From: Oikopleura dioica
Lineage: Eukaryota; Animalia; Chordata
DNA: 64,000 nt
Direction: 5' to 3'
Assembly: GCA_907165135.1 (NCBI GenBank)
Contig: OU015567.1
Location: 13,020,001 to 13,084,000, forward strand
In this document: positions 18,701-23,799 of the stretch, one piece after another
Layout: each line of letters starts with the position of its first letter
Numbering within the stretch: the stretch's first letter is position 1
The notes under the pieces: generated by a model
The model's input: only the letters and a program-made list of their open reading frames with translations
Databases searched by the model: none
Told to the model about the DNA's origin: nothing
Made by a program: the position numbers and the translations under genes

Positions 18701-19753
18701 CTATCTCAAATTATCGTAAAGCCCTAGATCGAAATTTTCTTCAGCTGAGTATACTCCTAAATGGCGAGATTGGTGGCAAGGCAAAGATGTCAAATATTAC
18801 CAATTCATGGGCAAAGATAATGTTCCGTTCCATTCTGTTCTTTTCCCCTCCTATTTGCTCGGCACTGGCAAGCCCTGGAATTTGGTAGGCAGACCCTAGA
18901 ACTTTCGAGAAGAAAATTTGTTTACTTAGGTGAACGTTATAAACGCGACGGAATATTTAAATTATGAAAACGGTAAGTTTTCGAAGTCGAGAGGGGTCGG
19001 TGTTTTCGGCAATCAAGCGGCAGAAACGAATATTCCATCTGATGTTTGGAGGTTTTACTTGATTTACATGAGGCCTGAAGTGCAGGATACTGAGTTCCAG
19101 GTAAGCTATTGTAATCTCAAGAGCTTGGTAGCACATAAAATTATAGTGGAGCGATTTCCAGTTGAAGAACAACTCAGAATTGCTCAACAACTTGGGCAAC
19201 TTCATCAACAGAGGACTGTCCTTTGTGGTCAAGTTCTACGACCAGAAAGTGCCCAGCGCGGAGATAAACGGAAATATGCGAGCTTGGGTTGCTGAAGTCA
19301 ACGTTTTGCTCAAGGAGTACATTGAATGCATGGAAAGTAATCAACAAAGAGAGGGATTAAGAAGAGTGCTTGCCATCTCAAAACTTGGTAACAAATTGAT
19401 TCAAACATGGCAACCGTGGGTCAAGGTCAAATCAAAGGTAAGCTTTTTCGGGGAAAAAGCTGTCTGAAATCAGTTTTAAGGATCCAGCGTTGCGCAACGA
19501 AGCATCAGCATGTGTGATGCTTTCAGCTAACCTCGTCTTTTTATTGTCCTCATTGTTGGAGCCCTTCATGCCCATGACTTCATTCGAAATCGCGAGACAA
19601 CTTGGTGTCGCGCGCGCTCAGATTCCATCAAAGTTCGGCGCTTTCTTGGAAAAAGACCACAAAGTCTACGAGAGCAGGCCATTATTCAGAAAGATTGAAG
19701 ACGAAGAAGTGAAAGAGTATCGAGTACGATTCGCGGGCAAAGCGGATAAATGA
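15731..19753 (+). CDS. MARS1: Cytosolic methionyl-tRNA synthetase with N-terminal coiled coil and no C-terminal appended domain
   Basis: [19 protein letters not shown] (HIGH), [10 protein letters not shown], zinc knuckle CPKPEC...[49 protein letters not shown]; 1458-bp intron 16526-17983; ends at a normal TGA stop. Confidence 0.97.
16603..17879 (-). CDS. Ankyrin-repeat plus SAM-domain protein nested antisense in a MetRS intron
   Basis: [10 protein letters not shown]... coiled N-terminus; ankyrin motifs [10 protein letters not shown] and [11 protein letters not shown]; SAM-like [50 protein letters not shown]; multi-exon, wholly inside intron 16526-17983. Confidence 0.7.
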
Positions 19754-19886
19754 AGAAATTAAGGGCGTAAGATAGGAAAATTATAATATTGTGGCTGCTT
19801 CTTTTTTAATTTATTTCTGTCTGTCATTCAACGAGGTTCACTTACTTACGTAGCATTTGACAAACACTTTCATCTTCAGAAGAAAC

Positions 19887-20036
19887 ATGTGCTGAGTGTT
19901 AATTTCGTGCTGTTCGGAGGCCTTCAAGGCTATCGGCCGATGTTTTGGTTGTTACAAAGACGAGGAAGACAAGCCGCAAGCTTCTTGACAACGGCCCCCG
20001 CAGCAGCAACAGCGAACTCGAGGTGGATGAGGTTAA
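19887..20036 (+). CDS. Candidate 49-aa selenoprotein A with three in-frame UGA (codons 3, 34, 48)
   Basis: MCUVLISCCSEAFKAIGRCFGCYKDEEDKPQASUQRPPQQQQRTRGGUG*; TGA at 19893, 19986, 20028; acceptor at 19879; paralogous to the next ORF; SECIS-like element downstream. Confidence 0.75.
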
Positions 20037-20051
20037 GCCTCTTCGAGAGGC
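20037..20051 (+). promoter_or_regulatory. SRE-like stem-loop 6 nt after terminal UGA (gene A)
   Basis: TGA GGT TAA then GCCTC-TTCGA-GAGGC; same layout in genes B and PITH with compensatory changes. Confidence 0.7.
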
Positions 20052-20096
20052 GAACTAAATCCACCATGCTTTGAGTCAACTCACGACTCATCCTTC

Positions 20097-20163
20097 TGGA
20101 CGAGCCAATGAAGCTTCTTGTGAAACGATTCTGTCGACACATTTTGCAGAAACTCTTCGTCCA
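20097..20163 (+). promoter_or_regulatory. Type II SECIS-like element (gene A)
   Basis: Helix I TGGACGA/TCGTCCA; ATGA at 20108; helix II GCTTCTTGTG/CACATTTTGC (four central mismatches); AAA; mini-helix CGA/TCG; GA at 20149. Confidence 0.65.
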
Positions 20164-20319
20164 ATTCTCAAATCTACTATTTCGTAAAATAAACCATTCC
20201 CTCCCATTTGATCCAGCATTATTTAATATTCCTCCATAATTATTTTGATTTCTGAATAAATTTTTCGCATTCCAATTTCGAGTTCTTCCTTAATTTTGAC
20301 TTTTCAGACAACGAACACC

Positions 20320-20517
20320 ATGGTTTTGTGATTGATTGTTTCGGGCATCCGCTCCGCGAGTAATGCCATTTCTAAGGCCCTCAAGGGTGACGATAGCCAA
20401 AAGGTAGTCTTCTTTTAATTTTATTGGTTTGAGAATGTTTAGCCTATCGAATCCTCAGGTGGCTGACAGAAACCCCAAGCTGTCGAGAAATCGCAGCAGA
20501 AGTCCAAATGAGGCTAA
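20320..20517 (+). CDS. Candidate 52-aa selenoprotein B with three in-frame UGA (codons 4, 36, 51); two exons
   Basis: Exons 20320-20403 and 20443-20517 (39-bp GT-AG intron): MVLULIVSGIRSASNAISKALKGDDSQKPIESSGGUQKPQAVEKSQQKSKUG*; TGA at 20329, 20464, 20509; acceptor ttttcag at 20307. Confidence 0.75.
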
Positions 20518-20531
20518 GCCCCATTTGGGGC
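20518..20531 (+). promoter_or_regulatory. SRE-like stem-loop 6 nt after terminal UGA (gene B)
   Basis: TGA GGC TAA then GCCCC-ATTT-GGGGC. Confidence 0.7.
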
Positions 20532-20583
20532 CCTCAATGATTCTACTTATTCATACGTCTCAGTAAGCAAAGACTTTCTTCGT

Positions 20584-20657
20584 GCGAGCTCATGAAGCCT
20601 CAAGCTCAAAGGGTACCTGCCACGACTTTTGGTGGAAAATTTTCTTCTCGTCTAAGA
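20584..20657 (+). promoter_or_regulatory. Type II SECIS-like element (gene B)
   Basis: ATGA at 20592, GCCTCAAGCT/GACTTTTGGT helix (imperfect), AAA, mini-helix GGT/GCC, GGAA with GA at 20635; helix I GCGAG/CTCGT; near-identical to the PITH-gene element. Confidence 0.65.
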
Positions 20658-20883
20658 TTGTCTTTATCCTCTTGACATCAGCAGGATAAACGATTTTTGT
20701 TGTATCACTGCTTTTCACACTTACTGTTGATATATTCAATATAAATCCTAATAAGCGATTTCTCGTGCACTGCCTGTTGTTAAAGTATATCGGTATATAT
20801 TGACTGTTCTCGTTTAATAAAAAAATCAATTTTTGATTGAAGAAAAAAGTTGAAGAATGAACTGATAGAAAACACAAACAGAG

Positions 20884-21535
20884 ATGAGTGGTTGTGTGAA
20901 ACTTGTCGAATTAGATCCCCTCGTGGACAAGGTAAAATTGTCCGAAAATTGCCGGGTGGGTATTCATGAATTTCTTATCAGGGGAAGTCTGAGTGCTTGA
21001 ACGAAGACGATGATCACACGTGGTTGAACGTGATCGAAGAATCCGCAACCGGAGAGCTCAAATCCGACTGCGATGAGCAGCTTATCCTCAGAGTAGAGTT
21101 TACTCAGCCCGTTAAGCTTCATTCTCTCGTCATTGAAGCTGGGTGTGACGCGGAGCAAGCCCCCAAAGTAAGAGAGCTTCTCGGAGGTGCGAATTTCTCA
21201 AACCAGGGTGCTTTTCTAGGAAATTCGACTCTTTGCGAATGAAACGAGTCCGATTTCTTTTGATGATGCTGAGCAGAGAAAGTCGACGCAGGACTTTGAC
21301 TTGTCCTTCGAAGAGCTGTCGAAGCCGATTGAAGTTCGATTTGTCAAATTCCAAAAAGTCAATAATATCACAATTTTCTTCAAGGTACATCTTTTCCGGG
21401 ATCTTTTTTTTTGAGTTCGCTCTTTAGAACAACCAAGGTGATCAAGATGTGACCTCCATGTCCAAAGTGCAATTTATCGGTTCGCCCATTGCCACAACGA
21501 ACATGAGCGAGCTCAAGAAGGTCGGATGAGGCTAA
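20884..21535 (+). CDS. PITH-domain-only protein (TXNL1 C-terminal-like) with predicted C-terminal Sec-Gly (...KKVG-U-G)
   Basis: Exons 20884-20931, 20982-21167, 21220-21384, 21428-21535; ECLNEDDDH, LKSDCDEQLILRVEFTQPVKLHSL, VRFVKFQKVNNITIFFKNNQGDQDVT, FIGSPIATTNMSELKKVG then TGA(21527) GGC TAA. PITH identity is firm; Sec read-through is inferred. Confidence 0.85.
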
Positions 21536-21550
21536 GCCCCTTCGAGGGGC
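21536..21550 (+). promoter_or_regulatory. SRE-like stem-loop 6 nt after terminal UGA (PITH gene)
   Basis: TGA GGC TAA then GCCCC-TTCGA-GGGGC. Confidence 0.7.
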
Positions 21551-21592
21551 GCCGCTGAACACAGCGATAAACAACATGTTTCTTCTCCAAAA

Positions 21593-21691
21593 GAGGATCT
21601 TCAGCGAACTTATGAAGCCACAAGTTCAAAGGGCCACATGCCACGACTTATGGTGGAGCGCATTTTTAATGTCATCGCTGCCTGGATTCTC
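21593..21691 (+). promoter_or_regulatory. Type II SECIS-like element (PITH gene)
   Basis: ATGA at 21612; helix II GCCACAAGTT/GACTTATGGT (9 of 10 paired, counting G-U); AAA; mini-helix GGC/GCC; GA at 21656; basal helices CAGCGA/TCGCTG and GAGGATC/GATTCTC. Confidence 0.75.
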
Positions 21692-21786
21692 TTTAAATTT
21701 ACCCTTTCTTCTGTTATAAAAATGCTTCAAAGTCAAGCTGACACCCTTTGATTGAAGAATGTTAAATCGCTAGAACAAAGAATAAA

Positions 21787-23799
21787 ATGACAGACGAATT
21801 CATGGAGAACATGGGAGAGTACTCCTTCGATATGTTGGAGTTACTCGGCACTGGTTCTTATGGATCGGTTCACAGGGCGGTGACAAAAGACGGGCTCGGA
21901 AACGAATTCGCGATCAAGAAAGTTACTACAAGCGATTTGAGCGATATGATCCGCGAAATCTCCTTCATGAAGCAACTCGACTCCCAGTTCATTATCAAGT
22001 ACTACGGATCATTCTGCTTGGACAACAGGTTAGTTTTTGGAGCTTTTTTTTGGATCAGATTTCAGAAGATCAGTTTAGCGATCGTCATGGAGTACTGCAG
22101 CGGAGGAAGTATCAGCGATATTTACAGGTGTAGAAAGCAAACACTGACAGAAGAGGCTTGCGCCACGATTATTCGGGACACCCTGTTTGGACTCGACTAT
22201 CTTCATCAGCAAAGAAAGATTCATCGAGATGTCAAGTGTGGAAATATTCTGCTGACAGGTAGTACTGCTTTCGATTTTTCGAAGAAAATTTGATTGATGG
22301 CGTTCAGAGAAGGGCGTAGCCAAGCTAGCAGACTTCGGTGTCTCCGGGCAACTTACAGAAACGTTCAATAAACGCAATACCGTCATCGGAACGCCGGTAA
22401 AGTTGCCTCATAATCGAATTAGCGGCCCAATTAAGACTCTGTTAAGTATTGGATGGCGCCGGAAGTCATTCAGGAAATCGGATACGACTGCTTAGCCGAT
22501 ATATGGTCGCTGGGGATCACTGCCATTGAAATGATAGACGGAAAACCGCCGTATTCGGAAATGCAGGTTGCTCGCGCTATTTATACGATTCCGCAAAATA
22601 GCCCTCCGACATTCAAGGAGAGTAACAAAAATCTATCTCTTGATTCAATCTTAAAAACGCTCTTGCTTTAGTCTTTCAGTTTGTTCACTTGTAATTACAG
22701 GATCCAGCAAATGTGTCGAACATTTTCAACAATTTCGTCAAGCGTTGTCTTATCAAGAAACCCGAGAAACGGAGTTCTGCTGCCGAGCTGCTGGAAGAAG
22801 AGTTCATCAAAAATGCTCGTCGATCGAGGGAACACATTATTGAAATTATTGAAGAAGCTCATGAAATCAAGAGACGACTGAGTCAGACGAAAAACAAGCG
22901 TCAGGAATCTATTAATCGTAGCTCAGGTTGATCAAGGTTGAGTCAACATGCGTTTTTACTGACTTGTGTAGGATCTGAAGAGAATGAATACAGTACTGTC
23001 CTCAAAAGCGAAAACTCTCCAGCCGGAACAATGCTTGAAGGATCATCTACGATCGTAAAGTCATTCAACAGTATGTGTGTTTACGAAAACACAACCAAGC
23101 AGTCGTCAAATCAGCGCAATACGTTCATGAATTATATCCAAGATTTGCCACCACCGCCTCAAGCTGCCCAGATTAGGTAACGCGTATATATATTTACGTC
23201 TTTGAGATAAATAGCCCAGAACAGCGGTTGAAACTTTAGAAATAGAAACGTCTTGATAAAAAGAAGCGAAATACTGTTGTAAAGCTCATGTAACAAATGG
23301 AGAGATAAAAAAAAACTATTACATATGTAGTAATTAACCGCGTTTTAAAAAGTATGAACCCAGATGTAGAAGAAATACGCAATATTCTAAAGGGAACGCG
23401 AAACCTGAAAGATTACTCGAGCGATCAGCTACGCAGATTTTTGGATTTAATTGACCCCATGATGGAGCAAGAACTCGAAGAAACGCGCGAGGCCTATTTG
23501 CAAAAGCAAAAGCCTATTACTGACGTAAGTCTTACTGTATTTCTCCGCATTTATAAGACCATGCTCTTATTAAACTTGAGTCTTGGTCACCAAGATGGGA
23601 TTTTTTGGAACTAAAGTGGAAACACTCTTCAACAACCAATTTGTTTTTTTTTCATAATTTTTCTACGGGGCTCACACTCAAGAAAACTCTTGTCTTTTCT
23701 TCAGTGCTCACGTGATTGCTTATTTGCTAACAACACTTTTAGGCATTAGAAGCAAAAAGACTTGCGCGACGGAATATGCAAGAAAAATACAACAACTAA
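21787..23799 (+). CDS. STK3: Hippo/MST STE20 kinase with C-terminal SARAH domain
   Basis: [76 protein letters not shown]; SARAH-like [33 protein letters not shown]. Confidence 0.92.

Follow-up and report, generated by a model that had tools for sequence, protein, structure and literature searches.

Hairpins directly behind the stop codon, 6 nucleotides past a probable selenocysteine UGA, in three neighboring genes of Oikopleura dioica

In SELENON mRNA, the selenocysteine (Sec) redefinition element (SRE) is a hairpin that begins 6 nucleotides (nt) past the UGA (PMC3628699, PMC8704476), and its ability to suppress termination and stimulate Sec insertion depends on stem and spacer alike (Howard 2005, 2007; review, PMC8704476). 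A stem-loop just past the stop codon of SelS, described by Bubenik in 2013, was first called a second SRE and was reported to promote insertion in its native context (PMC3628699). Cockman in 2019 found this SelS stem-loop to have no active part, and even to be inhibitory, in a V5-tag assay, and reported that post-stop stem-loops are predicted in 6 of 8 human mRNAs with C-terminal Sec (PMC6844570). The role of post-stop stem-loops in C-terminal Sec decoding is debated, and in mammals it has been tested solely for SelS and SelK, with tags whose presence displaced the UGA from the stem. Here we describe three short hairpins in a 64,000-nt window of the Oikopleura dioica genome (G000:C5:13020001-13084000, within a 64.3-Mb assembly of 19 contigs that was searched as a whole). 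They directly follow the stop codons of three neighboring genes, two encoding paralogous micro-open reading frames (micro-ORFs; genes 1 and 2) and one encoding a PITH-domain protein (gene 3), and may favor Sec insertion at the penultimate codon of each.

The initial annotation had placed three hairpins exactly 6 nt past a terminal UGA and beyond the true stop codon, and both sequence and fold agreed with it; each of the three genes ends TGA-GGN-TAA. All three lie on the + strand directly after the TAA, so that the first pair falls 6 nt past the UGA: hairpin 1 at 20037 to 20051, GCCTC(T) TCG (A)GAGGC, behind the TGA at 20028; hairpin 2 at 20518 to 20531, GCCCC ATTT GGGGC, behind the TGA at 20509; and hairpin 3 at 21536 to 21550, GCCCC(T) TCG (A)GGGGC, behind the TGA at 21527. 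Folding of 36-nt contexts with ViennaRNA recovered the expected hairpin at every site, with energies of -11 to -16 kcal/mol. At sites 1 and 3 a sixth pair, T-A, closes a 3-nt UCG loop, and the stems measure 5 to 6 bp overall. A perfect hairpin of at least 5 bp that starts at one exact position occurs at 1.1% of window positions and after 1.45% of TAA triplets. The 12-mer TGAGGNTAAGCC has three exact copies on the + strand, and four in all when one mismatch is allowed, versus 0.66 expected from shuffles. Two other folds were considered and rejected. A lower-stem extension, with GGN or the GA of the UGA pairing just 3' of the hairpin and the stop codon in a bulge, showed complementarity no higher than that of random 8-mers in all but one case (P 0.16 to 0.8). 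An alternative hairpin in gene 1, GAGGU-UAA-[G/A]CCUC, was the minimum-energy structure only in one diverged contig (L009, see below); it is not general, as an A.C mismatch stands at this place in genes 2 and 3, and thioredoxin reductase (TR) offers nothing that matches it.

The precedent invoked by the initial annotation, the SELENON SRE, has been correctly cited: its stem, too, opens with a pair 6 nt past the Sec UGA. The SRE is longer, however, and lies in coding sequence after an internal UGA, whereas here the spacer is formed by the Gly codon and a real stop codon, and the stem is untranslated, as had been proposed for this locus. Compared with the SelS stem-loop (SL1, or proximal stem-loop), which in human spans nt 3 to 36 of the 3' untranslated region (3'UTR) and starts 9 nt past the UGA, the stems of genes 1 to 3 have only 5 to 6 bp, start at 6 nt and belong to lineage-specific genes; SelS of O. 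dioica itself also carries a stem. An SRE-class structure near the UGA has been reported for vertebrate SELENOT, and the SelT-type gene of this genome is consistent with that in having a 12-bp stem 9 nt past its UGA; this stem differs from the hairpins of genes 1 to 3 in following an internal UGA, in lying in coding sequence and in being much longer. Stimulators of read-through and frameshifting, such as the MuLV gag-pol pseudoknot, likewise place a structure 5 to 9 nt downstream of the recoded codon, but they work with near-cognate tRNAs or slippage and without a Sec insertion sequence (SECIS) element, and are usually pseudoknots or long stems.

We then considered whether the terminal UGAs are decoded as Sec, which, judged from the sequence, they very probably are, in agreement with the initial annotation. 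Each gene is followed by a SECIS-like element of the form ATGA..AAA..GA with a helix II, and the features expected of a eukaryotic SECIS, namely an AUGA/GA quartet, an unpaired AA(A) in the apical region and a helix II of about 9 to 12 bp, are all present. The elements lie on the + strand at 20098 to 20162 for gene 1 (ATGA at 20108, 80 nt past the UGA), at 20584 to 20651 for gene 2 (ATGA at 20592, 83 nt) and at 21603 to 21680 for gene 3 (ATGA at 21612, 85 nt). Those of genes 1 and 3 were delimited by alignment and covariation, and that of gene 2 by covariation, a weak Rfam SECIS_1 match of 17 bits and a conserved island in RNA reads from a diverged lineage. In an alignment of the three elements, their orthologues and the SelS SECIS of the same genome, 95% of the helix II cells were paired and 7 of 8 pairs had changed on both sides; none of 500 shuffles equaled this, and slid controls collapsed. 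In the 3' quartet the window has GGA, where the diverged lineage has UGA. Moreover, the Gly codon after the UGA varies across lineages at its third base only (GGC/GGG/GGA in gene 2, GGC/GGT in gene 3), and the stop codon after it only between TAA and TAG. This pattern indicates that the sequence past the UGA is translated, and therefore that the UGA is read through.

O. dioica has an SPS2-Sec gene (PMC4561486), and we found GPx, deiodinase (DIO), Rdx and TR genes with in-frame TGAs in the same genome. Rfam SECIS_1 gave no match at its gathering score in the window and none at E <=10 genome-wide, which is uninformative since the same model misses the SECIS elements of SelS, SelK and Rdx of this genome. 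Our own model, R1, scored the gene 1 SECIS at 70 bits, by construction, and over the whole genome retrieved only genes 1 to 3, SelS and one CxxU Rdx gene, with no further copies of the cassette; it is a narrow model, which missed SelK and TR. A cruder SECIS scanner of our own making was dropped, having missed known cases.

The hairpin is retained in diverged relatives, where its absence had been named beforehand as a refutation of the proposal. In a single scan with TGAGGNTARGCCNCTTCGAGNGGC, JGI metagenome data yielded five contigs (L009 to L013) of diverged relatives, about 75 to 80% identical overall and representing 3 to 4 lineages. L009 and L011 hold all three genes, L010 a spliced gene 3, L012 genes 1 and 2, and L013 gene 1. 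At site 2, which the pattern did not select, the GCCCC/GGGGC stem is unchanged while the loop reads ATTT, AATT (L009) or GGTA (L012). Site 1 is identical in the pattern-selected contigs L012 and L013, and in L009, where it was not selected, it reads ACCTC TTCGA GGGGC, so that pair 4 is a U.G wobble and the basal pair is A.C. Site 3 is identical in the pattern-selected contigs L009 and L010, in which GGC has become GGT and TAA has become TAG. Counted as variable columns, gene 1 has 2 of 15 in the hairpin, 25 of 48 in the linker, 18 of 60 in the SECIS and 76 of 83 after it. The corresponding values are 3 of 14 (stem 0 of 10, loop 3 of 4), 37 of 58, 8 of 60 and 37 of 67 for gene 2, and 0 of 15, 46 of 81, 12 of 61 and 34 of 60 for gene 3. 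RNA reads of a diverged lineage behave likewise on gene 2: their alignment is good to 20532, is lost just past the hairpin and returns at the SECIS (20585 to 20633). The stem is about as conserved as the SECIS. The compensatory T-A/C-G change between copies that the initial annotation had pointed out is real at stem position 4, where U-A and C-G occur together with a U.G intermediate in gene 1 of L009; its statistical weight is another matter, to which we return.

This pattern bears on the notion that the hairpins have no function and are relics of a 3' cassette (tail, 3'UTR and SECIS) copied between neighbors. The cassettes are indeed related, sharing TGAGGYTAAGCC and the SECIS core, the tail and SECIS start of gene 1 resemble those of SelS, and the covariation is statistically weak. 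We nevertheless regard this explanation as very improbable, and the pattern of conservation disfavors it: the adjoining linker is 43 to 67% identical, with indels, between diverged lineages in which the stem columns are unchanged, loops vary while stems stay constant, and hairpins of unrelated sequence occupy the same place in TR, SelS and SelK.

As to their origin, the gene 1 tail (..TRGGUG* in the window, ..PSRGGUG* in L013) resembles the SelS tail ..PSRGGUG*, and the first 13 nt of the gene 1 SECIS (GAGCCAATGAAGC) are identical to a SelS 13-mer. Genes 2 and 3 agree at their 3' ends in the hairpin stem and have a near-identical SECIS core but differing linkers, and GCCC directly follows the TAA in TR and in genes 2 and 3, as GCCT does in gene 1. 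By sequence, the three cassettes are thus related and probably derive from the 3' end of SelS, whose proximal stem-loop may have given rise to the hairpin by shortening. That gene 3 shares its 3' cassette type with the unrelated neighboring gene 2 suggests that the PITH gene captured a Sec tail.

The association with C-terminal Sec proposed for this locus extends to three further genes of the genome. Besides genes 1 to 3, the C-terminal-Sec genes examined were TR, SelS and SelK, leaving out SelO and SELENOI; for TR, SelS and SelK, the hairpins are known from this one genome. TR (L015, G000:C2, - strand, TGA at oriented position 1828) ends ..SGC-TGA-GGA-TAA and continues directly with GCCCGTTAG(C) TTTA (G)CTAACGGGC (arms GCCCGUUAG/CUAACGGGC). 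This hairpin of 9 to 10 bp (-17 kcal/mol, z -4.1) starts exactly 6 nt past the UGA, and a perfect stem of at least 9 bp is found at one exact position in 0.01% of window positions (about 1e-4). SelS (L017) ends ..RGG-TGA-GGA-TAA, followed after 5 nt by GCTGGTTG(11 nt)CAACCAGC, a stem of 8 to 9 bp that begins 11 nt past the UGA. SelK (L016) ends ..GGG-TGA-GGT-CGG-TAA, followed after 1 nt by TGGTAGGG(5 nt)CCCTGCCA, a stem of 8 to 10 bp that begins 10 nt past the UGA. A stem-loop therefore lies 6 to 11 nt past the UGA in all six C-terminal-Sec genes examined, and at exactly 6 nt in genes 1 to 3 and TR. Over the 42 nt past the UGA, folding is stronger at the six sites than at 2625 TGA sites chosen at random (Mann-Whitney p 4e-5, with genes 1 to 3 interdependent). 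Since the hairpin is conserved in diverged lineages and recurs with unrelated sequence in TR, SelS and SelK, the observation stands above chance.

Internal Sec UGAs gave a mixed picture. The SelT-type gene (..CGGUGY..; L034, G000:C4:11963553-11963741, - strand) carries its 12-bp stem, counted with G.U pairs allowed, and one deiodinase (L038) is strongly structured, while four GPx genes are unstructured. To judge from these sequences, UGA-proximal structures are used in this organism. A genome-wide search with the pattern TGAGGNTAAGCCNC gave eight matches, five of them with neither hairpin nor SECIS; the pattern was too narrow and missed TR, which has GCCCG. In SelS (G000:C1:14528954-14529451, - strand), the Pfam SelS match spans three TGAs in ..RRNRR*ES*A*KT.., which resembles an unspliced intron.

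Post-stop stem-loops of C-terminal-Sec mRNAs are already in the literature, and the hairpins described here do not define a class of their own. Novel aspects are that the register is exactly 6 nt in four genes, that six of six genes examined in one genome have a hairpin, that UGA and SECIS lie very close together, and that selenoprotein genes specific to the lineage carry the element.

The recurrence in other genes also bears on a second alternative, a post-transcriptional element unrelated to recoding, such as a stem-loop for protein binding or mRNA stability or one that hides a cryptic site of splicing or processing within operon-encoded, trans-spliced mRNAs. Such a role would fit the conservation of the GCCCC/GGGGC stem sequence itself, as expected for sequence-specific recognition, and the trans-splicing of genes 1 and 2 within a tight same-strand cluster; a role in splicing, by masking of splice sites, has been discussed for the primate SelS stem-loop (PMC6844570, PMC3628699). 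We consider it quite unlikely, however. The hairpins of TR, SelS and SelK differ widely in sequence at the equivalent place, so that the common factor is the position beside a C-terminal UGA and not a motif. No such hairpin follows the ordinary ORFs of the window (0 of 54 long-ORF ends followed by AATAAA), and the short stems bury no GT or AG.

The distance between UGA and SECIS raises a third alternative, namely that the hairpin is a passive architectural element. In this scenario it would, together with second hairpins in genes 1 and 3, compact or insulate the short 3'UTR, allow the SECIS to fold and sit at a workable distance and keep the UGAGG tract off the SECIS; any stable stem would suffice, with no direct effect on the ribosome. 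The distance from the UGA to the ATGA is in fact nearly constant: the values for SelS (82 nt) and SelK (83 nt) are close to the 80, 83 and 85 nt of genes 1 to 3. The second hairpins, which sit between the post-stop hairpin and the SECIS, combine conserved stems with variable loops: that of gene 1 (TGAGTC-loop-GACTCA, + strand, 20072 to 20090) has an invariant stem and a variable loop in four lineages, and that of gene 3 ((C)GCTG-loop-CAGC(G), + strand, 21553 to 21566) retains its GCTG/CAGC stem while loop sequence and length vary in L009 and L010. RNAalifold predicts competing pairings of GAGG with SECIS-flanking sequence, and the mammalian SelS stem-loop acted through spacing in a sequence-independent manner (PMC6844570). 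As a candidate structure in its own right, the long-range pairing between GAGG and the SECIS flanks was discarded, having no covariation support.

Despite these points, a purely passive role appears unlikely to us. The strongest hairpin, with the same offset of 6 nt, belongs to TR, yet the best SECIS candidate there (ATGACGAAATTATGTTAAACC..), a weak one of 8.7 bits in a gene whose SECIS was found neither by Rfam nor by our own model, lies about 196 nt past the UGA; tight spacing is therefore not the common factor. Between orthologues the distance is 75 to 89 nt in genes 1 and 2, and gene 3 orthologues with a 23-nt linker insertion, at 111 to 113 nt, retain the hairpin nonetheless. Finally, a pure spacer does not need an identical start nucleotide in four genes.

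Our preferred reading, which we hold with about even confidence, is that the hairpins are selected 3'UTR stem-loops of real selenoprotein mRNAs, of the same class as the SELENON SRE and the proximal stem-loop of SelS, and most likely favor Sec insertion. With a UGA in the ribosomal A site, the mRNA about 9 to 12 nt further on is at the entrance of the mRNA channel. From ribosome geometry and the spacers of known recoding stimulators, the stem would thus abut this entrance and would favor Sec insertion over release-factor termination at the penultimate UGA, either by holding the ribosome at the UGA or by defining the geometry of the nearby SECIS, at a distance of about 80 nt. Termination is efficient in a UGA-G context. 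If Sec is not inserted at a penultimate UGA, the product would be a stable protein that lacks two residues, from an mRNA that would escape nonsense-mediated decay, and TR lacking its last two residues is known to be harmful. An enhancing activity and its mode, drawn from geometry, are a plausible addition to the structure, position, expression, conservation and recurrence in six genes that we observed. The dedicated recoding enhancer put forward in the initial annotation overstates this, and the idea had a forerunner in the SelS work.

Several observations weigh against this reading. The stems of genes 1 to 3 are short, and for hairpin 3, shuffled versions of the GC-rich context are about as stable (z -0.95). 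The scan pattern required the hairpin of site 1 or site 3, so the unbiased evidence of conservation comes from L009 (sites 1 and 2) and L012 (site 2); in L009 the gene 1 stem is weakened, and the alternative GAGGU/ACCUC hairpin is the minimum-energy fold. Formal covariation concerns one pair and is not significant, being equaled by 135 of 500 shuffles. Because their 3' cassettes are related, the three copies are probably not independent in origin and do not count as three events. Four GPx genes with an internal UGA have no nearby hairpin. Finally, deletion of the mammalian SelS proximal stem-loop raised recoding in a V5 reporter, and unrelated sequence could substitute for it (PMC6844570). Since the UGA was moved away from the stem in that reporter, it is silent on the native spacing.

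The genes themselves form a tight same-strand cluster at 19700 to 21850, with introns of about 40 to 55 nt, and all three are expressed according to RNA reads. Reads in this region have loose 5' ends, ..GAGTCCGATTTCGATTGTCTAACAG, directly before 19885 and 20320, which we take to be the O. dioica spliced leader; genes 1 and 2 are thus carried on spliced-leader mRNAs. The hairpins and SECIS elements of genes 2 and 3 are covered by mRNA reads, and the aligned reads of gene 1 end partway into its SECIS, at about 20131, because the RNA run comes from a diverged lineage. This run is mostly less than 90% identical to the window (judged from the differences listed) and matches contig L009, and it shares its species label with the best DNA holders of the window; the label therefore spans deeply diverged lineages.

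Gene 1 is a single-exon micro-ORF of 49 codons on the + strand (19887 to 20036; MCU...RGGUG*), which ends TGA GGT TAA and is delimited by sequence, the spliced-leader loose end at 19885 and RNA depth. Its in-frame TGAs at 19893, 19986 and 20028 are all kept, together with the frame, in four lineages. Gene 2 (20320 to 20517, + strand) is a paralogous micro-ORF of 52 codons ending TGA GGC TAA, supported by the spliced-leader loose end at 20320, by orthologues and by an RNA splice joint that defines exon 1 (20320 to 20403), an intron (20404 to 20442) and exon 2 (20443 to 20517). It has in-frame TGAs at 20329, 20464 and 20509, in places that match those of gene 1. In both micro-ORFs the TGAs fall at codon 3 or 4, at codon 34 or 36 and at the penultimate codon, and are kept in all four lineages. 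If all of these TGAs are Sec codons, genes 1 and 2 encode very small multi-Sec proteins. The gene 1 product is Cys-rich (CU, CC, CxxC), and a 30-residue piece of it gave a sub-threshold Pfam match to the cysteine-rich coronavirus spike endodomain (E 0.0044), which probably reflects composition.

Gene 3 (20884 to 21535, + strand) ends ...KKVG-TGA-GGC-TAA and comprises four exons defined by RNA splice joints, at 20884 to 20931, 20982 to 21167, 21220 to 21384 and 21428 to 21535. Proteins were compared exon by exon for gene 3 and in pieces for the micro-ORFs, rather than as joined spliced products. Searched in this way, gene 3 matched Pfam PITH with E values of 2.8e-16, 1.5e-13 and 0.0066. It is a stand-alone PITH protein in which the profile ends at ..KKVG and Sec-Gly is appended directly after it. 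A search for homologous proteins with PITH exon 3 found no match within a length window that left out full-length proteins.

A bolder version of the preferred reading, which we put forward as a possible but doubtful extension, holds that in this compacted genome UGA-GGN-UAA, the hairpin facing the ribosome entrance and the SECIS some 80 nt off together make up, over about 150 nt, a self-sufficient "Sec-tail cassette" with the hairpin as an obligatory second signal. It would probably have come from the 3' end of SelS or TR and have been grafted onto a PITH protein and two micro-ORFs, giving new selenoproteins, and the hairpin would answer a general need in the decoding of penultimate UGAs. This genome offers a compact natural series in which the stem lies at 6 nt in four genes and at 10 to 11 nt in two, with the SECIS about 80 nt off in five of the six, and the whole unit fits a reporter of about 150 nt. 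If the hairpin is necessary, C-terminal Sec genes, which are routinely cut off at the UGA by annotation pipelines, could be predicted better, and its presence would explain how a short 3' cassette makes a selenoprotein out of an ordinary protein like the PITH protein.

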